A stretch of 51,670 bases of DNA from Macrostomum lignano (lineage: Eukaryota), in the NCBI GenBank assembly GCA_002269645.1, contig NIVC01001964.1:1-51670 (forward strand), written 5' to 3'. The notes beneath the pieces were generated by a model, which worked only from the letters and a program-made list of their open reading frames with translations, searched no databases and had not been told where the DNA came from. Position numbers and translations under genes: made by a program. Shown here piece after piece: positions 7,528 to 40,530 of the stretch (its first letter is position 1; each line of letters starts with the position of its first letter).

Positions 7528-9135
7528 ATGAACGGCAAGACAGCGTCTGGAAGCGGCGCACTTGGCGGAGGCGCCGCCGGTTCAACTCATCATCCGCGAG
7601 TGCAGCCCAGCGTGGCAGCTTTCTACGACTGGTCGAGTAACATTAATGGCTGCGTGCAGGTGCGCCAGTACCACCAGCACCACGACCAGCAGCAGCTGTA
7701 CTATCAACAGGTTTGTTTTGAAAGAAATTCAAAGGAATCTCCGGTATGTTTTAATTACTCCTCTCGATTGGTAAGAGCAGAGCACTCTCCCGCACTCACT
7801 TGCTTCCAGGCTTATCAACGACAACAGAACGAATACCTGCAGCAGCAGCAAGAGGCGGCCTCGTCGGCGGGAGCGACGGCGACTGCGAATGGCGGCTCTG
7901 CCCAGGTTTTCCCGGTGCGCCGGCCGAGCAAGGCAACGCTGTCCAAGATGAGGCAGTACTACAACCCAGGCGTCCGACTGCTGCAGGCTGGCCGGCCGGC
8001 CGACCGGGCTTGGAAAGAGGCCGAACAGCTGACCAAAGGCGAACGGCACCTCGCGCTAGCGAGGGGCGCCGCGGCGGCTCGGGCTGGCGCTGTTGGAAGC
8101 GGCAGCGGCGGCGCCGGCTTGACATCGCAGGTGTTTTCCTGGGAAGAAGAGTCCGCGTCATCTGGTGATGCGCAATATCAACTCATGTCTGCCAGCTCTT
8201 TCAAGGTGAGTTAGTGCTCAAGAAAGCCCTAAAAAGTTTTCATCATCCTCAGTCTAAAGTTGATAGCCGAGCGTAACTTTAAATTTTGAGTCTTAAATCT
8301 TGCTTTTGTTAAATAAGGCATTACTTTGCCCTTTGTAACAGCTACAAGCATAAATGCTGGTTTAAGGAATTGCACCTATACGAGCTAGCAGCTACAATTG
8401 TATTATAAAATCACGGAAGAACTGCTGAAATGAATGACAAAATGCATGCTGCGGGAAGTTCCTTACTTGTAGACTAAAGCTTCTTTCACCCCGCCATCAA
8501 TTAAGCTATAGAATCACACCTCTGTTGTACTTCTGTGACGTAAACAAGTGAGCAAGCTGTGTGATCATGCAAAACTTGGCCTCACTTGATGGCTCTGTGA
8601 TGTCTTGCAATACAGAAACACCAAGGTCAAATCTTTTCAAAAAGCCTATTGACTATTGACAAGAATTCTACTCGTATTTACTGAAACTCGAAAATGGAAC
8701 TCAAGTCTTCAACCAAACTAACATCGTTACCAGACAATGCCTCAAACCATGACTCGACAGAACAGCGTCGGCGACTGCCAGTGCAGCTACGACCCGCGCC
8801 TCTACCCAGTGTACACATCCCGCAGCCAGGGCCCGATGTGCGTCGTCTGCAAGCGTCGTCGACGAATTCGTCAGCGCGATGAGTCGAACGGCGTGCGCAA
8901 TACCGTTGATGAGGAAGACGAGGGCGCGACGATGGCGCCGCCAAGCACGCCGAAGCCTGTTGAGGCGCGAGCAAAAGTGGCTGCTGTCTGGGATGGGGAT
9001 CGGCGAGCCACCACGTTGGACATCTTCCTGCCTAACGCAGAACGGGAGCCGGCTTCTCCCCTGCCGAGGCCGTCAACCGACTCAGCGCGGAGTCAGCGCA
9101 CGCTGAGCAGCCCGGAGCCTCCCTCTCTTTCATGA
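7528..9135 (+). CDS. Uncharacterised 3-exon protein (~326 aa), low-complexity Q/A/G/S-rich, with a CxC-x(19)-CxxC motif
   Basis: Exons 7528-7710, 7810-8205, 8734-9135. Introns are GT..AG and phase 0 (GTTTGT..TTCCAG; GTGAGT..CTAAC..ACCAG). Exons are GC-rich against AT-rich introns. No family recognised with confidence. Confidence 0.65.
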
Positions 9136-10412
9136 CGAGCAGTTGCTGCCCAGACGCGCCGATATCTAAGTGTCCCAATTAATATTCATACAGAAGTTTT
9201 TTGCGCGTAGCCTAATCTCTGAAGCCCGTGTGCCGTAGCTACGCTCGTATATATATTCGTATTCCTAATACTCGTTAAAACATTGTCTGGTGTCTTTCCT
9301 ATCACGGAGCCTCAATGTTCAATTTTTAATAAGCACGAGTTTGTTAGTGCTTTATCATTGATTCGAAAAGTGACACTTTCGACAAAAAATCCCAGAAATC
9401 ACATTATAAAATAATGGCAGACCCATCTGCGAATTTTCCTGCGATTTTGGACTTACAGTTGTGAGGCTATTTTTCGCGTGAGCATGCGGTTTGACGATCA
9501 TTCTTTGTCGTCTCTCAGTCGAGTATAGTATGAAAGACCTTTGTATCCATGAAGTTCCACTGCTGATGATTCCACTGCTGGTTATTTTCTACTGCTGATG
9601 ATAGACCAGCCTCGTAAAAAATTCCTAGTTTCCCGTCCCGGTGTTTGAGTAGTCCCTGTATGGCTATAAAATTGGCATGTACAAAAGCGATGACCACATT
9701 ACTTGCCTTTGATCTAAAAACTCCCCTATTTGCCGATTTAGAATTTTGAAGATAGAAACGATATTAGAAGGCTAATATTGTAAACTAATTTGATCGAATT
9801 ATAACTATAAAAGCAAATAAATTGTTCAAACTTGATTAAGCTATATATTGAATGTGTGTTCTTTGTTATTGCTTTACTTACGTGCGATATTATATCATGA
9901 TTTTAGATTTTGCTTGGCCATCAATTTTGTTTGACAGACATTCGCTGACAGACACTATATTGCTAGGTTAAAAAGAAAAACTCTAAAAGCAGGAGGTCTG
10001 AAAATGCATATGTTGAACAACTGTTTATTTTGAAAACAAATTAACAATTTATTCAAAGCATAACTAAAGCGAGAAAGCAATAAACAGAACAAAAACTTTT
10101 AAAACCAAACATGCATAAAGCACAATTGCGCTGCTTGGCTAAATCGATTCGGAAAATTACTAAGAGGTTGTTTATCGCATTATTATGTAGAAGAAAAAAA
10201 CATCATGTATACTAGAGGCGTTGGAACGTGGGGGACAGTGGGGCGTTGGAATGGGGGGCAGTATTGGTATCTGGCCCCTCCACATTTTAAATGTAAAATG
10301 TAGACTTTTTGCTTATTTTTGGTTTCTGCTGCTTTGCATGAATGCATTTTGCTGCAGGGCAACAAAACATAGCGCCTGCGGCACCAAAATGAGTGCCTGC
10401 GGCGCTTAAATG

Positions 10413-11739
10413 GGGATAGCGACGTTTGCCTGCGGGACGTTTGCCTGCGGAACGTTTGCCAGCTGACGTTTGCCTGCGGGACGTTTGCCAGCTGACGTTT
10501 GCCTGCGGGACGTTTGCCAGCTGACGTTTGCCTGCGGGACGTTTGCCAGCTGACGTTTGCCAGCTGACGTTTGCCTGCGGGACGTTTGCCAGCAGACGTT
10601 TGCCTGCGGGACGTTTGCCAGCTGACGTTTGCCAGCTGACGTTTGCCTGCGGGACGTTTGCCAGCTGACGTTTGCCTGCGGGACGTTTGCCTGCAGGACG
10701 TTTGCCAGCTGACGTTTGCCTGCAAGACTTTTGCCAGCCGACGTTTGCCAGCCGACGTTTGCCAGCCGACGTTTGCCAGCCGACGTTTGCCAGCCAACAT
10801 TAAGTCAGTGAGTAAAAAAATTGATACTGAAATATTCGCAGCTTAGCGGTTTGAAAGAACCCGGTTTTTTAGTTCAACTTTTTGACGGTTATTCGCATGT
10901 ATAGAAGTTCGAAAACAAAATCTTTACAAATTATGCAGTTCTTATCTAATATCTATAGTTTGACAACAATTTTTTGAATGTGAAAATATTATAAAGTTTA
11001 CTTCTGACAGTTTTGTATCGCTTTTCCCAGTTTGAGATGTTAGATTTTTGACTTGCGAATGAAGACACGCAAATTTAAACGGGAATCTCCAGCGAGACAA
11101 GTTCTAAGCAAATAAAAGAACTGCTGAACGATAATTCTGGCTTATATATTTCCCAGTTTATTGGGAGATCCAAAAGTATGCGAATTAATTCCAATGCAGC
11201 TTGTCAAGTGCACGCTGTCATGGCCGAGCTCCGTTAAGCAGAGTTACCATTACCATTTACCATTATGGATGTCTCAGTCTTTTCCCATTTAGCTTGTAAA
11301 CACTCAGCTTGTTTGGCCACTAAGATGGAAAGGGCCATTCCATGGCATACATGTACATAGACATCAACTGTGACGATGGAAACTCCTATTTTGTATTTTT
11401 ATCTTTCTATTTAGGCAGACAAGAGCAATAATAACTTCAATATGCCTGAACAGTAGTTTGTTAGTAACCTGCTGTATGTTTAAAAGCAGTAGTAGGGAGC
11501 CAGATGGAATCAGATTAGTGCTATGTCCACAGTTTTCAAATGCAAGTACATGTAGGCATAGAGAGGGCATACTTCTTTAACCAATTGCCACCTGCAAATG
11601 TCCGGCTGGCAAACGTCCCGCTGGCCAACGTCGGCTGGCAAAAGTCGCTGGCAAACGTCGGCTGGCAAACGTCGGCTGGCAAACGTCCCGCTGGCAAACG
11701 TCGGCTGGCAAACGTCCGGCAGACAAATGTCGTAGACCC
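10413..11739. mobile_element. Non-autonomous Foldback/MULE-like DNA element (1327 bp) with tandemly repeated subterminal inverted repeats
   Basis: Left end GGGATAGCGACGTTTGCCTGCGGGACGTTTGCC; reverse complement of right end GGGTCTACGACATTTGTCTGCCGGACGTTTGCC. GACGTTTGCC arrays at 10421-10797 and inverted at ~11595-11720. 9-bp TSD GCTTAAATG (10404-10412) / GCTAAAATG (11740-11748), 8/9 match. Confidence 0.75.
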
Positions 11740-11941
11740 GCTAAAATGAGTGCCTGCGGAGCTAAAATGAGTGCCTGCGGCGCAAATATGAGTGCCTGAG
11801 AGGCGCAAAAATGAGTGCCTGAGAGGCGCAAAAATGAGTGCCTGAGAGGCGCAAAAATGAGTGCCTGCGGCGCAAAAATGAGTGCCTGAGAGGCGCTAAA
11901 ATGAGTGCCTGAGAGGCGCTAAAATGAGTGCCTGCGGCGCT
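11740..11941. repeat. 20-21-bp minisatellite (AAAATGAGTGCCTG[CG/AGA]GGCGC); its left part is at 10372-10412, split off by the foldback insertion
   Basis: The same unit occurs on both sides of the 10413-11739 element. Confidence 0.85.
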
Positions 11942-12817
11942 TTATAAAACGAGTGCTGGCAAGACGGATTCTGACAATAATCGGTACATTATAATGTGCA
12001 TTTTCCATGTAAAAAAATCTAGCTCGACGGAGGCGTGCGCCCTGTGCGCCCCCCCTCCCTAAATCCGCCACTGAACCTGCCCCCCATTTTTTGAAATTTT
12101 CCTAAGCCTATGGAAAGAAATTATTAACAGATGTACGAAAATTCTGCTATTGAAATGGTAAAGTGACTAATTTAAGCCCTCGAAACTTTTGGCTCATTAG
12201 CTCATTCCGCTCACTCGCACAAAATGAATCTGTTACAGGAGCTAGACACGTTGACCAGGTATAAAATCGGTGAAATTATATAAATTAGATTATAGTATTT
12301 ACGCTTTCCGCTCCTGTAGCCTGGAAAAGTGTGGCTAAAGATGCAGGGAATTCATCTAATGGGAAACAGATTGCAGAATGGATGTTCGCAAAGCCGGCTC
12401 TGGTCATAGGTCAGCCGCCCGAGCCTTAGGAATATTTTAGGTAGCGTTCGAGCCTGAGGAAAAGGTTCTGTACGGACCCCTGCCCTTAATGAGCAGGCAC
12501 ACCGCATCATTCCCACGCTGCTTTAGCGGGTCCTGGTGATCAGGAATTGTTTGAGCTATCTGGTGTAGCCGGGAAGTCGAAAATGGGACTATGCAGCCAT
12601 GCAGAGGACTTTCCAGGCAGTGGATCTTCAGGCTGTGAATGAAGAAGATACGCCCGTACTAGCGCATTAGACTACAAAGATTGCTATGAGGGAACGTGAG
12701 CTCTATTGTTCCCAGATGATCAGTGCCAGTACAGGGATGCGACGCTCGTACAGCTTCGTCTGGTTGATTATCATGCAGCTAAGAATTGAAAAGCAACCTG
12801 CAATAGTGGCACAAGAT

Positions 12818-15916: not shown

Positions 15917-16778
15917 TACGTTACACTTCTCTGAAATTTTTAAAAGCAATACCGCGTCGTGCTGAGCAACTCCTTGTTGCTCACTCTTAGGCCTATAATA
16001 AATAATTAATCGTATTGGCATTTACAAGTTATGATTGGCGTATGCAGTATTATTAGAGAGTCAGCATCTGATTTTAAGAGAGTAGATGATGATAGAAGAA
16101 AGAAGAGAGATAAGAAAGCAGAGATAAAGGTGAAGAGATAAGAAGAGAGAGGAGAAAAAATAGGGAGCAATGGAGAGAAGAGATGTGATTTATTATATTA
16201 GACTAGGCCTATTATATTATGCAATATAATTTGGCACCCAAGATAATTGACATTGAAGTGTCTGGTACCAAAATCTCTAGCACTAAAATGTCTAGTATTC
16301 ATTCTAATTTATTTAGTACTAGGAGTTAGTAAACACAAAGTTTTAACAAAATAAAAATAAAATAAAAATAATTTTTTAATTTTTTTCAATTGCTTCTATA
16401 TAAATTTATAAAGCTTTTTGCTATATAGGCTCTTATATTTGCAGTCAAATCTCTTATTCTAATTTCTAAGCTTACCTTACCATTGCAATTAAAATTGTTA
16501 TACTTTTATAGCCTAGGCCTAGTATAGTAAAAATGGTCTAGGCCCTACTCTTTATCAAAGAAAATTTTGGTATAGGAGCCTATATACAGCCAGGGTCCCT
16601 AATGGCAATGCATTTGGTCTTTAATCATGGTATATACAATATATAAGTATTTGATGCATATAGTATACAATTTATTTTTAGTGACTTTCATGAATTATAA
16701 TATTTATTTGTTATAATATTTGCATTTTAAAATGTTTCACTTATAAATATGTTTTATACCATATTGCTAAACGTGATA

Positions 16779-18056
16779 TGAGGGTTGTCAAAAAAGTTCT
16801 GTATATATTGTAATAACTTGAGAATGATAAACAGTAGCCTATAGAAATATAAAAAATTACAAATGTCTTCCTTAATATTTATTCACTCAAAGTATGAGCC
16901 TTTAGCTTCAATGCACTTCTTCTAACGCTGCACTAGCCCATCAATGCCTGCAATCATGCCATTGTTTGTCATGGCAACAATGCCAGCCTTGTAGGCCCGA
17001 TTCACATCTTCTTTTGCACTGAAACGCTGGCCTCACATTGACTCCTTGATTTGAGGGAAAAGGAAAATGTTGCATAGACTTAAGTCCAGGGAATAAAATG
17101 GATGTGGAAGAATTTCCTATCCGTACAACTTGACCGTAGCTAGCACGCTTTGCTTTTGGTATAGGGCTGTGTTGTCATAAAGCAGAATCAGGCCAGCCAT
17201 GTGAAATGCAGGCCTTTGTCCCGAATGGCATGCCAAACTTTCACTAGAACTGACAGGTAGAAATCACCATTGACCATCTGCCTCACTGGCACAGGCTGAT
17301 CAAACAACAGACCCTCCTGGTCAAAGAAAGTCACGTGCATGACCTTAAATTGACCAATGCTCCAGATGGCCTTTGAGGTTGTGGAGAACCTGGCCTGCAC
17401 ACAGGAATGCCATGCCCTCCCACTGACACCGCTACAGGTTGGATGCGCACATGGCAACCTACTGAGCCTGCTGATTGTCAGTGAGCAGATGTGGCATCCA
17501 CTTGGCACAGACCTTGCCCATCCCAAGGTCCTTGGTCAGGATCTTGTGAACTAAGTTGTAGGACACCCCTATGGCATCAGCCAGCTGCCTAGTGGTCAGT
17601 CTCCAGTCCTGCAGCATGGCTGCCTCCACCTGACTTACCAGGCTGTCAGTCCAAGCACTTGTTGGTTGTCTACTGCGTGGCTTGTCATCAAGGTCTTCTT
17701 TGCCATTGCAAATAGCAATAGCCCAGTAGCAAATTGTCTCATAAGATGGGCAAAAGTCTCCTATGGTCTGCTATATTTCTTCAAAAATCTTGGTTGCTGA
17801 ATGCCCCTAAAAGACATGAAACTTGATGATCACTTGATTGTTGTGTTTAGAAAAACTCTCTTGCAGGACAGAATGCGCCATGGGTGTGGTTGAATAATTA
17901 CTGCTACACAGGCTAGAAATGATCTGGTGCTCTAAAACTGAAGCTAGCAACTCTTTATATATATATATATATATATCTATGGCTAAAACCCAACTCTTCA
18001 GCTATTCATAGAGTTGAGTTATTCTCTTATACACAGAACTTTTCTGACAACCCTTG
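16779..18056 (-). mobile_element. Decayed mariner (Tc1/mariner) DNA transposon, ~1.28 kb
   Basis: TIRs TA|TGAGGGTTGTCAAAAAAGTTCTG and CAGAACTTTTCTGACAACCCTTG|TA, with TA TSDs at 16777-16778 and 18057-18058. Internal transposase pseudogene. Confidence 0.95.
16883..17881 (-). pseudogene. Mariner transposase pseudogene
   Basis: Manual translation shows KVCAKWMPHLLT (WVPHEL motif), KVMHVTFFDQEG, LLYDNTA, HPFYSLDLSLCNIFLF (YSPDLAPSD motif) and R*KKCIEAKGSYFE*. Several in-frame stops; the TGDE(K/T)W first catalytic Asp segment is missing. Confidence 0.93.
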
Positions 18057-19508
18057 TATATGTACAATACACTAGAAATAATTTGGCTATCATCTAGTAA
18101 AGTATACGCTAATAAATTATACCAATTAGGTATTCTAATTAATTGTATGCCACTAAAAATTGCGTGATTACAAAACATAGAACCAATGACACAAGCAATA
18201 GATATGTGGCAAATAATTGCTACAAAAAAGCAAAACTATTAAAAAAAATTAGTAAAACAAAATAGTTATATATTACCTTTTGTTTTATATATACCTATTG
18301 TTTTAGGTATATTTTTAACTAGTAACTATAGAAACTAATTATATTATTAAAAAATATTTATTATCATAAATTTAAAATTACTTTTAGGCCTACTATAGCA
18401 AAGAATTGTTTAGCATAATTTATGAAATTATGACATATACTTTGATTCTTTTATATGCTGTGCTGCAAGCTTGAACATGTATAGTTAAAAATTATAAGCT
18501 AGTAATTATGCTAAAAAGTTGTATTTTCTCCTTGTACGCCATATATACACTAGCTAAAACATTTGTATACTAGATATATGCCAGCTAAAGCATTTGTATG
18601 CTGGAATTTTCCAGTGTATACTACACCTTCTGCAATATGGGTTTTATATAGTTTTGATAGGTTAATATATGCTATACAAATAATATAGAGATAATTTATG
18701 CTTTGCTAGGCCTATCTTTTTGACTAGGTGATATTAAGGTCATGATCTTTTGGTATATTACTAAATAATACTTAATCTACTTCTGATGTGTTATATATTT
18801 TGAGTAGTATTTAATGCTTAGTTCTTAGGCTGAGCCTTCTTATTGCACTGTATTAATCTTATTTGTTTTGTTTTCTGTACTTACCTTATTCTAATCTCTA
18901 TTTGCTTTTGTTGGTATTTTTTCTGTCTAGACATTATTGAGATTAGAGGGTCATAGTTTAATAGGCCTATTCTAAAACTATATATCTATATTCTATTTCT
19001 ATATTCAAAAATGACCAGCACTTGATTATTACTAATTCTAAGGTTACTAATTGAGTTTGCTTTGAATATTATAACTCAATGGAAATATATACAGTTTAAA
19101 CTAACAACTTAATGTTTTTCTCTTTCTATATATTTTCTCCTATTTCTAATAGGAAAATAATTTTTTTTATCATTTTAAAGGCAATGAAAAGGAAAATGAA
19201 ACTTCTTAGAAATAAGTCTTAGAAGCCTAGATAATTAAAAACATAAGCACTAAAGTACATCAGGATGTATTAAAAATATTGGTTTACTGGAAAATATATA
19301 TATACTTAACTTTTATATTGCCTTACATTTAATGTTAAATTAACATTTTTTATTTTTACTAACATTTATTGTTATTATTATACATTTCTGTAACTCTATT
19401 GTATACTATTATGTAAGTTCTACTTTTACTCCTTGTTGTATGCCATGTCATGCCATATCCATTGTCAAAAACTTCTATTGAAGCTATAATTTAAAAAAAA
19501 TCTTTTGC

Positions 19509-22500
19509 ATGCAAAACATGTATCTAGAAGTATTCAAAGAGCCAAGAGGAATGATGCGGCTTATTCAGCTGGTGAGTATTTATTTTGTTTTACTTGACAT
19601 TCACCTAAATTGGTCACTCGATGCTAGTGGTGAATGCACTCAGTTTATATATAATTTTGATTCTTAATGATTTATTTATTGTCAGAGTTTGACTACTGAT
19701 AAGTAGAAAGTATAGACTGTGGCGCGAAAAGCTTGCATTACAGGCAAAAAATGCCGCCATGCAAGAGTGGAAGAGTATAAGTACATTTGCATGTGTTCAG
19801 CGTAGCTTATGGGTGAAGTCTAGCATTGAGTCATCTGAAGAAGCCTACGAGTATAAGGGCAGAACCCTGTCCTGGCAGTATCACCCGAGTTCGGTTGCAC
19901 TATTTGTGTTTTTAGCTATTTGCAATCCTGGCATTTTCTACGACTGCCGGCTATAATTCAACAATGAAATTCGAGTACCGATGCAAGACGGGAAATGATA
20001 CTGGCAGTCGGCAGCTCACAGTTAGCTATCCATTCTATATGCCTGACTCGGCTGTTGAGTCGATAGTCTGTCCCAGCACTGGCGTCAGCACTGTTCAGCC
20101 TGGCCTCAACTATCCATTTGGTAGCTATATGTCCTCTGCTCAGTTCTACGTTTTTGTTGGCGTGATGGCCTTTCTCTACTGCATTGGCATCACTGTTCTG
20201 TATGTCGTCTTCGAGCAGGTCTACAATGACAATGACCTGGTGCCCCAGATTGTAAGCTCCTGCGGTTTGGTTGACTGTTGCTCTCCTGAGTCAGTTTGGT
20301 CAGATATAGCTCACTCCTGAGTCAGTGGTCAGATATAGCTCACTCCTGAGTCAGTGGTCAGATATAGCTCACTCCTGAGTCAGTTTGGTCAGATATAGCT
20401 CACTCCTGAGTCAGTTTGGTCAGATATAGCTCACTCCTGAGTCAGTTTGGTCAGATATAGCTCACTCCTGAGTCAGTTTGGTCAGATATAGCTCACTCCT
20501 GAGTCAGTTTGGTCAGATATAGCTCACTCCTGAGTCAGTTTGGTCAGATATAGCTCACTCCTGAGTCAGTTTGGTCAGATATAGCTCACTCCTGAGTCAG
20601 TTTGGTCAGATATAGCTCACTCCTGAGTCAGTTTGGTCAGATATAGCTCACTCCTGAGTCAGTTTGGTCAGATATAGCTCACTCCTGAGTCAGTTTGGTC
20701 AGATATAGCTCACTCCTTAGTCAGTTTAGTCAGATATATTGTAGCTCACTCCTGAGTCAGTTTGGTCAGATATAGCTCACTCCTTAGTCAGTTTAGTCAG
20801 ATATAGCTCACTCCTTAGTCAGTTTAGTCAGATATAGCTCACTCCTTAGTCAGTTTAGTCAGATATATTGTAGCTCACTCCTGAGTCAGTTTGGTCAGAT
20901 ATAGCTCACTCCTTAGTCAGTTTAGTCAGATATAGCTCACTCCTTAGTCAGTTTAGTCAGATATAGCTCACTCCTGAGTCAGTTTGGTCAGATATAGCTC
21001 ACTCCTTAGTCAGTTTAGTCAGATATATTGTAGCTCACTCCTGAGTCAGTTTGGTCAGATATAGCTCACTCCTTAGTCAGTTTAGTCAGATATAGCTCAC
21101 TCCTTAGTCAGTTTAGTCAGATATAGCTCACTCCTGAGTCAGTTTGGTCAGATATAGCTCACTCCTGAGTCAGTTTAGTCAGATATATTGTAGCTCACTC
21201 CTGAGTCAGTTTGGTCAGATATAGCTCACTCCTTAGTCAGTTTAGTCAGATATATTGTAGCTCACTCCTGAGTCAGTTTGGTCAGATATAGCTCACTCCT
21301 TAGTCAGTTTAGTCAGATATAGCTCACTCCTTAGTCAGTTTAGTCAGATATAGCTCACTCCTGAGTCAGTTTGGTCAGATATAGCTCACTCCTTAGTCAG
21401 TTTAGTCAGATATAGCTCACTCCTGGGTCAGTTTAGTCAGATATAGCTCACTCCTGGGTCAGTTTGGTCAGATATAGCTCACTCCTGAGTCAGTTTGGTC
21501 AGATATAGCTCACTCCTGAGTCAGTTTGGTCAGATATAGCTCACTCCTGAGTCAGTTTGGTCAGATATAGCTCACTCCTGAGTCAGTTTGGTCAGATATA
21601 GCTCACTCCTTAGTCAGTTTGGTCAGATATAGCTCACTCCTGAGTCAGTTTAGTCAGATATAGCTCACTCCTGAGTCAGTTTAGTCAGATATAGCTCACT
21701 CCTGAGTCAGTTTGGTCAGATATAGCTCACTCCTGAGTCAGTTTGGTCAGATATAGCTCACTCCTTAGTCAGTTTAGTCAGATATAGCTCACTCCTTAGT
21801 CAGTTTAGTCAGATATAGCTCACTCCTGAGTCAGTTTGGTCAGATATAGCTCACTCCTGAGTCAGTTTAAACACCATGAGCTGTGTGATCAGCTATTAAA
21901 AACTTTTAAGCTGATTAGCTACTGCACACAGTAGTCAGTAATGTGTATGCTGTTAGTAACCAATACATAGCGAAATCTGGCCCCGCAGGATTTCATAGTC
22001 ACCGCCGTTTGGACTCTGTTCTGGTTCATCGCCTCCGTGGCCTGGGCCGTCGGCGTCAGCTTTTTTAAGCTAGAGACCTACCCGGACAGGCTGTGGCACC
22101 AGATCACCGCTTGTCTGGGCTTGGCCGAATGCAAGACCAAGGAGTACTTTGGCTATGGTGGCTTGGATGTGTCGCTTGTAAGTTCGAGTAAAATAGCTTT
22201 CTTTTACAAATACATGGCTATTCTATTATGGGAGAGTTTTTTGATATTTTGTACTTTAGACTGTGCTTTTTCAGATTAGTATATCTTATTGTAGTGTGCT
22301 ATCTGACAGCCTGTAATGTTCTGCATAGTGCTGTAGTGTACTGTCTGAGCCTGTAATGTCCTGAATAGTGCTGTAATGTACTGTCTGACAGCCTGTATAC
22401 GAGAACTGTAATGTATCTAGATACTAGGTGACAGACTGCATAATGCTGTAATATACTGGGTGACAGACTGAATAATGCTGTAATGTACTGGGTGACAGAC

Positions 22501-31416: not shown

Positions 31417-34483
<3,067 letters not shown>

Positions 34484-34549
34484 TAGGTCTGGAAGCTCTG
34501 AGCAGTAGGTACCTGGTGGCTTCCAATTCATCATCTTCAAAAGTACGCG

Positions 34550-34981
34550 TAGGGATCGCAAAACCTTGGATCCCGGGATCTGGCTAATATAACTACAAGC
34601 ATAACATTGCTGTCATTTTAAAGCGGCAGATTTCTTCTTTCTACGCTAGTAATAAATTATACATTTGGCAAGTATGCCAGCAGGGACAAAGTTCGGCGCA
34701 GTCTCTTTCATGGTCGATTGACAGGATGCTCAAGCGAAGGGAGAAGTGCATGGCTACAGGTAGAGACTGTTGAGAAAGCTGTCTGGAAGGCTGATGATGG
34801 CTCTATAAGAACAAACCATCTCTTTTTATCTACTTTATCGCTTTAAAATGACACCAAATAAGTTTGCAGCTGAGTTTCCATTTGGGTTTTCTAAAAATGT
34901 CCGAACTTTCCTAACACCCCCTCGTACGAGGTATATTGATATTGATTATTTTTTTCTGATCCCGGGATTTCGCGATCTCTA
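34550..34981. mobile_element. Probable degenerate MITE containing a mariner-type terminal fragment
   Basis: Ends TAGGGATCGC..ATCCCGGGAT and ATCCCGGGATTTCGCGATCTCTA are imperfect inverted repeats; no clear TSD. The internal GAACTTTCCTAACACCCCCTCG|TA (~34903-34926) resembles a mariner TIR. Confidence 0.45.
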
Positions 34982-35304
34982 CTTCAATTAAATAATTTAA
35001 GCCTGTGTTGTTCAACTTAAGTCATTCGTCCTCTTGACTAGATATTCTATGTAGTGGCTGTTGATCTGCTTTCTTTTTTAGATCTTAAACAAGCACTGGT
35101 TCTTTGTTACACTGTTCACTGCGTTCATTAACTGTATGTGTTTTGTTCATTATTTACTGTGGCTTTCTGGTACTCGCAAACAATTCATTACTTCTGGGTT
35201 TGTTGAGCTGTTAAATGATCAGAAGGTTTCGGTAATGAATGCCTAATTTTAATTTTATCCTGAAGATTTAGCCCTTTGAAAACTTTACCATGTTATTGCA
35301 AACA

Positions 35305-35725
35305 ACTCACCAGTGATTCTAGCGACTCTTGTAACTTTTCAACCACTCGAACGACTGCAATGCGACGGAGAGGCGACTCTTGAGTCACGAGCTCATCACG
35401 TGAATTGCAGAGTCGTGAAAAGAGTCGCGAAAAGTCGTTCAAGAGTCATTGTGCTAGCGCTTTAGTTGCAACTCGGTGATTCTACAGTGACTCTACGGCC
35501 CCAGAGTGACTTGCACTGCCCGAGAGTCGTTTCAGAGTCGCAGGCAATAAAACGCTCAAATTTGACTCTTAAGCGACTCTGACCACTTTTTTGGCGACTT
35601 TTAACGTGACATCTCGTTGCTTTAGAGTCGTTCGTCTAGAGTCACTTCTTTCATATTTCACCTTTATTACCTGTACCGACTCTAAAGCGACTTTGGGGCC
35701 ACCCAAGTTGACTCTATGACGCTTC
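35305..35725. repeat. GAGTC/GACTC-motif-rich block, probably an interspersed element
   Basis: About 15 GAGTC/GACTC pentamers in ~420 bp with no simple periodicity. Confidence 0.55.
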
Positions 35726-36094
35726 TTGGCCTTGGTACCGTTTTCAAGCGGCTAATATCCTTAAAAAAATATTCTTTCCATGCAACACTAAGCCGTTTAA
35801 TACCTTCTATCTCTGCTTGGATTGTTTTGCTATCAAGTCTTGTTTTTTTATCTACTATGCAATGCTATTGAGAGTATCGGTGTTTAGTCATATGACATCA
35901 AATACAATTATTTTTCTGTTAAATACTTATCACAACTAATGGCGATGGCATTAGGTATTAGGTACAGACATAAAGCTATTAAACTGTTAGTTTGTCTTAT
36001 TTTAAAAACTTTTTTGAAACCATCTACTAAGATGAACGAATTTACCAGAATGCAGTAAGTACAGTGCAGAACACTAGATATCTAGATATATGGA

Positions 36095-36350
36095 CTACTA
36101 ATCTGTCTCCTATACGGTACATATAAAAAACGAAAACTCTGTATGTGTGTATGTGTGTGTACTAAGCTTGTTACGGACTCTCAAACGGCTCTACCAAATG
36201 ACACCAAATTTTGCACTCACCATAAACTCACTACCGAGAATGAGAGAGGAGAGTGCAGAGACGAGACGAGAGAAAAAGAGAAGAAATAAGAGAGGAGAGA
36301 AGGCGAGATAATATATGAGCTAAGAAAAGAAGCGAGAGAGGAAAGAGAAT
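36095..36350 (+). mobile_element. Possible Helitron/DINE-1-like non-autonomous fragment
   Basis: CATATAAAAAACGAAAA followed by a (TG)-rich microsatellite, then AAACGGCT..ACCAAAT..CACCAAATTTT and a GA-rich tract; this layout resembles Helentron/HINE 5' ends. Recognised from pattern only. Confidence 0.4.
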
Positions 36351-36393
36351 TTTAAGGACCCAAGGCCCAAGGGACGTAGAGAGAACAGAGGCC

Positions 36394-37183
36394 GGAGTTT
36401 TCCCACGCATGCGTTAAGAGTTCAGATACCTGGTTGGTTACCATTTTTACCTCTATCCAACTATTGACAATTTTTTGTTAGAATTTGATTTCAGAATTAA
36501 GAATGTCAGGAAAAATAGTTCTGGGGATTGGAATTCCACGAGTTCAAAATCCGCGGTTTCAACAGCTTGTAGTAAGTACATAAACGTAACCTTATTGGCA
36601 TTTAGCTGCGAGTTCATGCTCTCTCCTATGGCCAAGCGCTCGTCCGGCTGAATTAACTGAATTTCCAAGAAAAAAACAGGTCCGAGAGACAAGAGGGAAT
36701 GTACATTGCAAACCAGCCCCCCACCCCCCGCGGAGTGAGGAGTGCTATGCTATCTACGAGCGTACTTTATTTTTCGTTCCCCCATCTCGCCGATTATTTC
36801 CTGGAAATTTCAACCAGTGAAGTGCGCTTAATGACGGATAGGGCTACGCTACATTCAAGCATAGAGAATGCAGCTCAGAGAGAAATAAAGATCACGTGAT
36901 TTCCATCAACCCAGGGCTTAACTTAGCGGCAACGCGATGCACTCGGTCAGTGGTTGGTCGGGGCCCGCTAGATTGTTAAAAATAAGCGGAGGGAGAGGTT
37001 AGCACAGCGGATACCGCTCGCCGCAACTAAATTTCCAAGAAATCTTAGGATTTTTTGGAAACCGAAAAAAATTACGGACAGTAGACCCTCGCACAGCGTA
37101 CTTGTTCATTATTGTGTGTTGCGGTGGCGCTTTCTTGGAAATTCCAAGCTCAACTTCCCACCGCCTGAAAGTGTATATATATA
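36394..37183 (+). promoter_or_regulatory. Putative immune-inducible viperin promoter (4 GAS, 1 IRF-E, kappaB-like sites, TATA)
   Basis: TTCNNNGAA at 36663, 36798, 37033 and 37132; GAAACCGAAA at 37058-37067; GGAAATTCC at 37137-37145, GGAATTCC at 36530-36537, GGAGTTTTCCC at 36394-36404; TATATATATA at 37174-37183. Confidence 0.6.
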
Positions 37184-37292
37184 CACAGAGGCTGGACGCG
37201 ACGGATGGTCACCACCATAGCAGCTTTCGTGTTTGTTGAAATCTCTGATGTAAATATCCATTGATCAGTTTGATAGAAAAAAATATCTAGAC

Positions 37293-39509
37293 ATGCCAAT
37301 AGTTTTGTTTAACAATATCGAGGGCAGCTTGCCATCGAGTTTGATTACGCTGGTTAAAATCGCTCTGACTCATCTGGGTCACCTGGGTCAGCTGGCTCTT
37401 GCCAATGTACGCGGATTTATATTCAGGCGTACATTGGACGCTGGCAGAGATACAAACGATGAAGCTGAGAAGCCACGAGCCGCCGGCGCCGCCCCGCCAG
37501 AGTCTGTGGTGCCGGTGAGCGTCAACTATCACTTCACCAGGCGTTGCAATTATAAGTGTGGCTTCTGCTTTCACACGGCAATTAGTTCGTTTGTACTGCC
37601 GCTGGAGGAAGCTAAGCGAGGCCTGCGGATGCTGCAGGAGGCTGGTAAGGCTGGTTCGATTGTTGGTCCATGGTATTTTACTTTACTTTGCACTTTGCAG
37701 ACGGTGAGCTCCATTTTAAGCACCGGGCTACGGGCGCCCATTGAAGCACCTGTAGGGCTGGGAGCAGCGCCGCCCATTGAAGCACCTGTGGGACTGGGAG
37801 CAGCGCCGCCCATTGAAGCACCTGTGGGACTGGGAGCAGCGGCGCCCATTAAACAGCCAAGGCGCCCGTGCGTAGACCAACGCTGTCAGTAGTATAGTGA
37901 AAGTATGAAACTCTGTAACCACCCGCAGGCATGCAAAAGGTGAACTTCTCAGGCGGCGAGCCGTTCCTCGAACAGCGGGGTCGCCTGCTTGGCGAGATGG
38001 TCCGCTTCTGCAAGGAGACTCTCGGCCTGCCAAGCGTCAGCATCGTCAGCAACGGCAGCCTCATCACCGAGGAATGGTTCCAGACCTATGGTGAGTGAGC
38101 TGCTCTGCCCCCGATGAAAACTGTGACAGACACTAAGACTTGCAGACAGACGCTAGGTCAGATACTGAGACAGACGCTAGGTCAGATACTGAGACAGACG
38201 CTAGGTCAGATACTGAGACAGACGCTAGGTCAGATACTGAGACAGACGCTAGGTCAGATACTGAGACAGACGCTAGGTCAGATACTGAGACAGACGCTAG
38301 GTCAGATACTGAGACAGACGCTAGGTCAGATACTGAGACAGACGCTAGGTCAGATACTGAGACAGACGCTAGGTCAGATACTGAGACAGACGCTAGGTCA
38401 GATACTGAGACAGACGCTAGGTCAGATACTGAGACAGACGATAAGACAGATACTGAGACAGACGATAAGACAGATACTGAGACAGACGCTGCTAAGACAG
38501 ATACTGAGACAGACGCTGCTAAGACAAATACTGAGACAGACGCTGCTAAGACAAATACTGAGACAGACGCTGCTAAGACAAATACTGAGACAGACGCTGC
38601 TAAGACAGATACTGAGACAGACGCTAAGACAGAGTTGCAACAATACCCAACCGTACCAAAACTCTCCAGGCGAGTGGCTGGACATCCTAGCCGTGTCCTG
38701 CGACAGCTTCGACGAGGCCACCAACCGGGCCATCGGACGCCACGCGCCCCGGAGCCACCACCTTGATAAGCTTTACCAGATCAGCGAATGGTGCGCTCGC
38801 TACCGGGTGGCCTTCAAAATCAACACCGTTGTCAACACGCACAACTGGCAGGAGGACATGGCTGATCAAATCCTGGATCTCAACCCGTGCCGCTGGAAAG
38901 TCTTCCAGTGCCTCCTAATCGGCGGCGAGAACTGCGGCGAGGACAGCCTGCGCCACGCCGAGACTTTTGTGGTCACCGATGAACAGTTTCGCAGCTTCCT
39001 TGACAGGCACAGCCGCGTGGAGTGCCTGGTGCCGGAGAGTAACGAGAAAATGCGCGACAGCTACCTCATACTGGATGAGCGGGTGCGCTACTGCTTCTAG
39101 AGGGGTCCTTGCAATGGGGTTTGCTAGCTGATGACGTCATTGACAATTTGGTGACGTCACCGGTGAAGACGTAATTTGTAATCAACAACGTCATTCGCTA
39201 TTTATTGCATCATATTATACTTCTTGATGACATAATCTTGGATTTATTACGTCATTTTCTATCATTAGATGATATTCAGAACCATATGTTGAAATCGTTG
39301 AATATCTCGACGATCTAGAACGGGTTAGTCAACCAACAATCCCACAGATGCGCTTCCTCGACTGCACCCGCGGCCGCAAGGAGCCCTCGCGCAGTATCCT
39401 GGATGTTGGGGTCGCCAACGCCATCTGTTCCAGCGGCTTCGACGAGGCGATGTTTCGCAGGCGAGGCGGAGTATACCAGTGGAGCAAGAACGACATCATG
39501 GAGTGGTAA
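37293..39509 (+). CDS. RSAD2: Viperin (radical SAM ddhNTP synthase), ~362 aa, 4 exons
   Basis: Exons 37293-37644, 37929-38090, 38670-39082, 39348-39509 total 1089 nt in a single frame. Motifs [20 protein letters not shown] (CxxxCxxC), [80 protein letters not shown]...EW*. Confidence 0.98.
37733..37850. repeat. 36-bp intronic repeat (~3 copies) in viperin intron 1
   Basis: GCGCCCATTGAAGCACCTGTGGGACTGGGAGCAGCG repeated. Confidence 0.9.
38130..38635. repeat. 24/27-bp intronic minisatellite (GAGACAGACGCTAGGTCAGATACT), ~20 copies, in viperin intron 2
   Basis: Direct reading; variants change progressively from 5' to 3'. Confidence 0.96.
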
Positions 39510-39992
39510 CGCCTGCCTAGCCAGTCAGCTGATGACTACTGACTACTGACGTCATCGAAATCTATGGGACCTCCTTTTTTAAATACTATTCAATCTGTTT
39601 CTATTTACACATTATTTAAGTAAATTTATAATTTTTATCTATGCTAATCTACCATACAAAAAATATATGCTATAATCATGGCAGCCCCCGCTTTGTTTAG
39701 AACTCCTTTTTTAATCTGTTTTGCAAATTTTCATGACATTTTTGAACTACGAGTTATGTAGCCAGTTTTGACCACATCTGTACATAAATTTCTCGTTTAG
39801 TTCCTCATACTTATGGAAACTGTGACTTATTGTATCCATCGTTTGTTATAGTTCCCAATTATATAATACAGTCAGTTTGCTTTTGTTTAAACATGCGTAT
39901 CCAGAAATTGCACCAATATATGGTGTACTATTTTGCACGTTATGTGACTTTTTATTGGACTGATTTTGACTCGACCTTTTCCCTTGTATATT

Positions 39993-40530
39993 CATCTTTC
40001 TCTTGTCTGTCTCCGTCTTTCTCTCGTCTGTCTCCGTCTTTCTCTGTCTGTCTCCGTCTTTCTCTTGCCTGTCTCCGTCTTTCTCTTGCCTGTCTCCGTC
40101 TTCTCTCGTCTGTCTCCGTCTTTCTCTCGTCTGTCTCCGTCTTTCTCTGTCTGTCTCCGTCTTTCTCTCGCCTGTCTCCGTCTTTCTCTCGTCTGTCTCC
40201 GTCTTTCCCTTGCCTGTCTCCGTCTTCTCTCGTCTGTCTCCGTCTTTCTCTTGCCTGTCTCCGTCTTTCTCTCGTCTGTCTCCGTCTTTCTCTTGCCTGT
40301 CTCCGTCTTTCTCTCGTCTGTCTCCGTCTTTCCCTTGCCTGTCTCCGTCTTTCTCTTGCCTGTCTCCGTCTTTCTCTTGCCTGTCTCCGTCTTCTCTCGT
40401 CTGTCTCCGTCTTTCTCTTGCCTGTCTCCGTCTTTCTCTTGCCTGTCTCCGTCTTTCTCTCGTCTGTCTCCGTCTTTCTCTCGTCTGTCTCCGTCTTTCC
40501 CTTGCCTGTCTCCGTCTTTCTCTTGTTCGT
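39993..40530. repeat. Pyrimidine-rich minisatellite, 20/21-bp unit (CTGTCTCCGTCTTTCTCTCGT), ~26 copies
   Basis: Direct reading. Confidence 0.96.

Follow-up and report, generated by a model that had tools for sequence, protein, structure and literature searches.

Few antiviral effectors are common to bacteria and humans; viperin is among them, and, to our knowledge, the way in which it is switched on in animals outside the vertebrates has barely been mapped. The locus analysed here, from the flatworm Macrostomum lignano, raises the question of what controls such a gene in an invertebrate. The window is the entire contig NIVC01001964.1 (51,670 nt), and a sequence-only reading of it had placed a fourfold 13-bp STAT/GAS motif, accompanied by IRF and kappaB-like sites, upstream of a viperin gene.

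The viperin gene and the sites before it

The gene downstream of the sites is a genuine invertebrate viperin/RSAD2, as the earlier reading had held. It occupies 37293-39509 on the forward strand in four exons (37293-37644, 37929-38090, 38670-39082 and 39348-39509) with GT-AG introns, and its 362-aa product is 100% identical to BOX15_Mlig028573g1. The assignment is supported by a score of 544.5 bits on the curated model TIGR04278 (cutoff 450), by the radical-SAM motif CNYKCGFC (CxxxCxxC) encoded in exon 1 and by the C-terminus ...DIMEW with its terminal Trp. Identity to vertebrate RSAD2 amounts to 62-71% at the protein level. Upstream, a GT2/DPM1-like gene is arranged in tandem with viperin on the same strand; it ends at 34483 with its own stop, followed by AATAAA at 34651, and its 3' end is located more than 2 kb before the site cluster. 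NDUFB6 lies farther upstream still. The automated gene model P0242 splices DPM1 to viperin across the region, whereas the evidence-based annotation separates both genes.

All four copies of the 13-mer sit at the positions originally reported for them, as confirmed by a sequence check of the window. Sites 1 (36660-36672, forward strand; core TTCCAAGAA), 3 (37030-37042, forward strand) and 4 (37131-37143, reverse strand) are exact copies of AATTTCCAAGAAA, with their centres at -627, -257 and -156 bp from the viperin ATG, respectively. Site 2 (AATTTCCAGGAAA; 36797-36809, reverse strand; centre at -490 bp) is a one-mismatch copy, the core of which (TTCCTGGAA) lies within the palindrome ATTTCCTGGAAAT at 36796-36808. 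This palindrome is perfect over 13 bp and contains the optimal STAT core TTCCNGGAA, which occurs nowhere else in the 51.7-kb window. From centre to centre the four promoter sites are spaced 137, 233 and 101 bp apart, and the cluster spans 484 bp. A fifth, distal copy that had escaped the first reading, TATTTCCAAGAAAT, is found on the forward strand at 33043-33055, in an intron of the DPM1-like gene and at a distance of 4.2 kb upstream from the viperin ATG. Two minisatellites flank this copy, but it is itself in unique DNA, and it could be either a distal site or a stray one. Alignment of the copies shows that the invariant core is a 12-mer, ATTTCCARGAAA, rather than the 13-mer, as they share ATTTCCA[A/G]GAAA alone and their flanks are unrelated. 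Within the window, TTTCNNNGAAA is confined to these five copies.

The TATA-like run previously noted near 37174 was recovered as TGTATATATATACACA at 37172-37187 on the forward strand, 106-121 bp before the ATG and 37 bp downstream of the centre of site 4, and is the predicted core promoter. Placed from this run, the transcription start site (TSS) would be near 37205 and the sites at approximately -540 to -70 relative to it; the position of the TSS is not certain, because in M. lignano trans-splicing affects 38.8% of genes, and polycistronic transcripts make up about 7% of the total (PMC5730564).

Several accessory elements accompany the array. An ISRE/IRF-E-like core, GAAACCGAAA, lies between sites 3 and 4 at 37058-37067, and the slightly longer GGAAACCGAAAAA (37057-37069) fits the core of the full ISRE GGAAANNGAAACT but without the 3' CT. 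The ISRE core GAAANNGAAA has six matches in the window, so that one would fall within the 484-bp cluster by chance with a probability of about 5-10%. Overlapping GAAACCGAAA, a degenerate half-copy of the motif in reverse complement, GTTTCCAAAAAA (37051-37062), forms together with site 3 the imperfect palindrome TTTCCAAGAAATC-TTAG-GATTTTTTGGAAA. The kappaB-like 9-mer GGAAATTCC at 37137-37145 overlaps site 4 and consists of the motif's own AATTTCC with GG in front, a GG that is missing from the other copies; it is probably incidental. Neither kappaB decamer (GGGRNNYYCC or GGRRNNYYCC) is present in the cluster, and the upstream kilobase holds a single GGRRNNYYCC, at -899 from the ATG. Hence, the IRF and kappaB-like sites of the earlier reading are both at the positions given for them, but the former occurs at near-chance frequency and the latter does not fit the kappaB consensus, and the two contribute little to the reading proposed here. 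A palindromic E-box, ATCACGTGAT, at 36891-36900 abuts an ATTTCC half-site, is the same in three homeologous copies of the locus, and is a possible co-factor site.

Origin of the motif copies

Chance is excluded as the source of the main motif. With up to one mismatch allowed, the 13-mer has five matches in the window, where 0.11 would be expected, and a count of five was reached in none of 100 shuffles of the window; for the 12-mer ATTTCCARGAAA, five occurrences in 51.7 kb stand against 0.02 expected, and it is found zero times in about 190 kb of DNA covering eight other animals. When the 893-bp promoter was simulated 3000 times with a Markov-1 model, just five simulations gave any 11-mer three times or more. 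Outside minisatellites, the window contains eight TTCYNRGAA sites, half of which (4/8) fall inside the 484 bp, and none is located within 1 kb upstream of NDUFB6 or of the DPM1-like gene. The claim of four sites is accordingly borne out: they are clustered, strongly non-random and at promoter distance from viperin, 156-627 bp before its ATG. A second motif, the 9-mer AGCGTACTT at 36759 and 37097, was considered and rejected, since its frequency does not exceed chance in a region of 900 bp.

Repetitive DNA was evaluated as a separate source, as minisatellites are abundant in this contig and 121 of 170 sliding windows hold some 11-mer at least three times. One of them, a 39-bp minisatellite of 23.6 units at 31934-32854, even carries the STAT5-type core TTCTAAGAA in each unit, a documented STAT5 ChIP site (PMC3907443); its link to the promoter array is probably coincidental. 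The statement that the copies lie in otherwise unique sequence holds, since TRF detects no tandem array between 34070 and 37734, which leaves the promoter copies as individual sites scattered through unique DNA. Combined with the unrelated flanks, this rules out tandem, MITE-like and dispersed repeats.

That the copies are non-functional relics is, in our assessment, improbable. They could in principle represent the ends, as terminal inverted repeats, of two small MITE-like elements inserted at 36660-36809 and 37030-37143, old micro-duplications or a genome-wide repeated word, as the genome is repeat-rich, the fifth copy is intronic and 4 kb distant, and the promoter copies make up two inverted pairs, with plus and minus copies 137 bp and 101 bp apart. 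However, copy orientation means little for a site that is quasi-palindromic, and the two putative elements have unrelated interiors (z = -0.09 in direct orientation and a weak 2.9 in reverse complement), no target-site duplications are present, and there is no tandem structure. Moreover, the similarity halts exactly at the 12-mer in 5/5 copies, and old duplications in which similarity ends there would themselves imply selection on the motif. A structured or non-coding RNA was also rejected as an explanation: no match to Rfam was obtained, the fold z-score is -2.4, copies 3 and 4 are unpaired in the predicted structure, and the segment in question sits upstream of the TATA run. In our assessment, the four-site array is likely a functional site cluster.

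Comparison within the species adds little to this assessment. M. lignano has three homeologous NDUFB6-DPM1-viperin blocks (the window and two further loci, L002 and L012), and the five copies, the ISRE-like core, the E-box and the TATA run are kept in 3/3, in promoters that are 98.5-99.5% identical. Between the window and L002, identity reaches 99.5-100% over the region from about 36360 to 39950, including the introns, as compared to about 95% for the upstream intergenic DNA; as the near-identical block also covers the introns, it indicates gene conversion or recent duplication rather than constraint. The L012 viperin protein is 98% identical to that of the window, and the 933-bp promoter shows about 13 differences, which predicts about 0.7 changes within the 52 bp of sites; zero are seen, an outcome with a probability near 0.5. 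Across the homeologs, the changes expected within the sites are about 0.3-0.7, and this divergence is too low for the retention of the sites to be informative on conservation. In the nearest other species, an 87%-identical protein (P0002/P0243) is represented by transcripts of about 1.2 kb only, in which both the N-terminus and the 5'UTR are unrelated. When the exon-1 peptide was used as query, no further genomic DNA of Macrostomum was found among the matches listed, and the high-coverage fragments that were inspected carry vertebrate-type N-termini.

The factor that may read the sites

The GAS assignment made at the outset is upheld: the four promoter copies, and the distal fifth, fit both TTCN3GAA and the STAT5-type consensus TTCYNRGAA. 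The fixed 3-bp spacing, the conservation of both halves and the everted symmetry TTCC-N-GGAA fit a STAT dimer and are opposite to the kappaB arrangement (GGAA...TTCC). Classic STAT5 tetramer targets carry tandem pairs at close spacing, and the flatworm spacings of 137, 233 and 101 bp make cooperative tetramer binding unlikely. In other respects, the array resembles known STAT5 targets with multiple GAS sites, namely those of the mammalian CISH/SOCS and beta-casein type, Drosophila Socs36E/10xSTAT92E and shrimp crustin, in which TTCYNRGAA sites likewise form homotypic clusters near the TSS; these differ in that the product there is a feedback inhibitor, in contrast to the antiviral enzyme of the flatworm. 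The individual cores have precedents as well, since TTCCAAGAA, TTCCAGGAA, TTCCTGGAA and TTCTTGGAA appear among human STAT5A/B ChIP-seq sites (PMC3907443) and a shrimp STAT EMSA probe includes ATTCCAAGAAAA (PMC5645147).

Whether flatworms possess a STAT is disputed in the literature. A 2026 survey lists STAT as 'not detected in Platyhelminthes' (PMC13203501), whereas a planarian stat5 homolog is described whose expression rises alongside that of mx1 and RIG-I-like receptors during the response to dsRNA (PMC8797187); the planarian stat5 sequence given in the supplement of the latter study, the one flatworm STAT sequence found here, is a truncated one of about 115 non-conserved residues. In the supplements of two M. 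lignano resource papers, no STAT, IRF or RSAD2 symbols were found. At least six Mx genes are present in M. lignano (PMC11789081).

STAT sites that overlap those of BCL6/Ken end in GAAA, and BCL6/Ken-like repressors, for which the Ken consensus is GNGAAAK, compete at GAS-like sites. It is possible, if rather unlikely, that the array is a functional cis-regulatory module read by a factor other than STAT, such as a Rel/NFAT-type protein recognising the GGAAAT half-site, a BCL6/Ken-like BTB zinc-finger repressor or a lineage-specific factor. The disputed STAT repertoire of flatworms (PMC13203501) speaks for this, as do the GAAA at the end of every copy and the reverse strand TGGAAATT, which resembles NFAT/Rel half-sites and in site 4 gives rise to the kappaB-like 9-mer. 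However, a Rel dimer needs a 5' GG, which is not conserved among the copies, the GGGRNNYYCC decamer is missing from the cluster as described above, and copies with AAGAAA fail the Ken consensus, while the two conserved halves at fixed distance in everted symmetry are the arrangement of a STAT site.

Genuine STAT-type sites could also serve another purpose, i.e. tissue-specific or developmental expression in gut or gland, growth or hormone-like STAT5 signalling, or the control of a neighbouring gene, and to this we assign a small probability. Mammalian TTCYNRGAA sites do mostly drive growth-factor and hormone targets (PMC3907443), but viperin has proved to be an induced antiviral effector in each case tested, namely in oyster (PMC8218723), Nematostella (PMC8476169) and amphioxus (10.64898/2026.08.17.745176). 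As for a neighbouring gene, the sites are within a few hundred base pairs of the viperin ATG but more than 2 kb beyond the 3' end of DPM1.

Comparison with other animals and the proposed switch

Vertebrate viperin is driven through ISREs by ISGF3, IRF1 and IRF3, with STAT entering as a component of ISGF3. The analogy to an IRF/STAT-driven vertebrate gene that had been drawn for this locus is consequently imprecise, as vertebrates use the ISRE and not GAS. We compared the 1 kb before the viperin ATG in C. virginica, Pinctada, Pecten, Asterias, Acanthaster and Branchiostoma, with fox and catfish as controls. In these scans, which were anchored on the ATG whatever the positions of TSSs and 5'UTR introns in the compared invertebrates, the six invertebrate promoters hold 0-1 plain GAS each, in line with the background rate, and the extended GAS occurs in none of them; a pair of ISRE cores is found in Pinctada alone. 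The same ISRE scan that was applied to the flatworm recovers the ISREs of the controls, at -147 in fox and at -85 in catfish, and detects no GAS within 1 kb in either. An ancestral GAS array across phyla was thus rejected, the array being missing from 8/8 other animal viperin promoters scanned, which indicates that the flatworm arrangement is lineage-specific and not ancestral. Furthermore, the controls, with ISRE and without GAS, show that the flatworm promoter is built differently and is no conserved copy of the vertebrate one.

What the flatworm gene shares with vertebrate RSAD2 is the effector itself and a compact proximal promoter, which is inducible in vertebrates and predicted to be so in the flatworm; what sets it apart are its four GAS sites and single ISRE-like core, the latter at chance frequency. 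The head-to-head CMPK2-RSAD2 arrangement of catfish and amphioxus is also missing, with DPM1 located upstream in tandem instead, and unlike the flatworm promoter the two oyster-group loci that were scanned are without a GAS array.

The closest parallel is found in amphioxus. In Branchiostoma japonicum, BjSTATa/b activate the viperin promoter through the STAT sites BS2/BS3, as demonstrated by mutagenesis in reporter assays (bioRxiv 10.64898/2026.08.17.745176), and in the 22-kb Branchiostoma locus examined here 4/5 GAS matches fall within 3 kb of upstream sequence, including TTCCAAGAAAT at -758. Both animals thus have an invertebrate viperin with STAT-type sites upstream, those of amphioxus proven to be needed and those of the flatworm predicted from sequence. 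The layouts differ, the amphioxus sites being spread over 1.8 kb as compared to four near-identical 12-mers within 484 bp beside a TATA box. Amphioxus is moreover a chordate with described IFN-like ligands and receptors, whereas we know of no interferon-like cytokine in flatworms. The idea of a link from STAT to viperin is hence already known in kind; the flatworm case and its clean four-site architecture are new.

Elsewhere, viperin of Nematostella is induced by poly(I:C), and the promoters of the induced genes are enriched for STAT, IRF and NF-kB motifs (PMC8476169). In oyster, the IFN-like protein CgIFNLP is required for expression of CgViperin, CgMx and CgIFNIP-44 (interferon-induced protein 44) (PMC8218723). 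The oyster IFN-like system and the planarian dsRNA response, with prlr1/3, stat5 and mx1, both represent induced antiviral programmes of spiralians that include viperin or Mx and in which STAT is involved or co-induced. Neither study maps cis-elements (PMC8218723, PMC8797187), and viperin was not found among the planarian dsRNA-response genes in the text and supplements of PMC8797187.

Based on these comparisons and the architecture of the array, we propose that the four candidate STAT-type sites and the TATA box form an inducible, STAT-driven viperin promoter, which is the best available reading and one that we hold with evenly balanced confidence. The segment of about 490 bp would constitute the inducible proximal promoter of M. 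lignano viperin. Upon an upstream signal, for example nucleic-acid sensing or a cytokine-like factor, a tyrosine-phosphorylated dimer of an invertebrate STAT5/6-like STAT would occupy each ATTTCCARGAAA site, and the presence of several near-identical sites by the TATA box would keep basal transcription of viperin low and allow a steep, high-amplitude induction. The lone ISRE-like element between sites 3 and 4 might supply IRF input, yet it is dispensable for the model. The 'interferon-like circuit' placed behind viperin by the sequence-only reading is an extrapolation, while its suggestion that the 13-mer be used to find the rest of the regulon is plausible.

In a wider sense, flatworms may run a STAT-centred inducible antiviral programme, in which ATTTCCARGAAA would be the cis-code marking a regulon that comprises viperin, stat itself, RIG-I-like receptors and the Mx genes, of which there are at least six; taken with the amphioxus result, direct STAT control of viperin would be ancestral to Bilateria, with the vertebrate ISRE/ISGF3 mode as a later replacement; we put this forward tentatively, as a doubtful proposition. 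The array nevertheless represents a concrete and falsifiable cis-regulatory prediction in an animal for which stable transgenesis with promoter fragments of 1-2.5 kb, RNAi, RAMPAGE and single-nucleus ATAC are available (PMC5730564, PMC11398382). Should the STAT reading prove false, a striking lineage-specific motif cluster would still call for another factor. If it is true, M. lignano would have an infection-reporter promoter ready for use, and the 12-mer could serve as a probe for further genes of the response, for example Mx (PMC11789081). The link from STAT to viperin would then reach from chordates to Spiralia, and would help to decide whether flatworm STAT signalling works in immunity.

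Homeologous viperin blocks and a fused gene model

The NDUFB6-DPM1-viperin block is present in three homeologous copies in M. lignano, namely in the window and at two further loci (L002 and L012). Between window positions 36360-39950 and L002 positions 9066-12635, promoter, exons, introns and 3' flank are 99.5-100% identical, and a length difference of 24 bp in viperin intron 2 corresponds to one unit of the 24-bp minisatellite found there (38144-38633, 19.8 units). Directly upstream of this block the identity drops to ~95%, with numerous indels, a pattern pointing to gene conversion or to duplication in the very recent past. In the third homeolog, L012, the protein is 98% identical.

An automated gene model of 431 aa (P0242, UniRef A0A1I8IYZ1), spanning approximately 34000-37330, continues from the last exon of the DPM1-like gene (...KLGGSEI) into viperin exon 1, which it enters at an internal acceptor (GSLPSS...), thereby treating the entire viperin promoter as an intron. 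The DPM1-viperin fusion is probably a prediction artefact. Polycistronic, trans-spliced transcripts occur in M. lignano, an observation that bears on such a model.

E-box and repeat arrays around viperin

Approximately 400 bp before the viperin ATG, the promoter contains a perfect palindromic E-box, ATCACGTGAT (36891-36900), identical in all three homeologs and immediately abutted by an ATTTCC half-site (CACGTGATTTCCATC). Further upstream, ~4.4-5.4 kb from viperin, an intron of the DPM1-like gene harbors a minisatellite of 23.6 units of 39 bp (31934-32854), adjoining the fifth copy of the GAS motif. Every unit includes the STAT5-type core TTCTAAGAA, a STAT5 ChIP site on record (PMC3907443), and the array supplies 24 of the 32 matches to the STAT5-type consensus TTCYNRGAA in the window. 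The core may be there by coincidence, or the repeat may bear an array of sites.

Viperin intron 1 also holds a minisatellite (36-bp unit, 3.2 copies, 37735-37850), and more arrays flank the gene at 39995-40526 and in the 41-44 kb region, the latter strongly strand-skewed. Elsewhere, a weak mariner-type transposase remnant lies on the reverse strand at 17188-17526 (Pfam Transposase_1, E = 3.5e-4, under the family threshold) within a stretch of low GC (0.29-0.38, 16000-20000), and a weak MARVEL-domain ORF occupies 19964-20320.

Viperin loci in other animals

In amphioxus (Branchiostoma, L007 1-4196) and catfish (Ictalurus, L011 1-3829), a thymidylate-kinase (CMPK2-like) gene is located head-to-head upstream of viperin, as is the case for the mammalian CMPK2-viperin pair. 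M. lignano lacks this pairing, and the DPM1-like gene instead precedes viperin in tandem.

Within the 22-kb amphioxus locus, four of the five TTCNNNGAA matches fall within 3 kb upstream of viperin (ATG-relative positions -2887, -2804, -2113 and -758), one of them being TTCCAAGAAAT, close to the flatworm motif. A preprint (bioRxiv 10.64898/2026.08.17.745176) reports that the viperin promoter of amphioxus contains STAT sites that are functional, and this upstream concentration of predicted sites is consistent with it.
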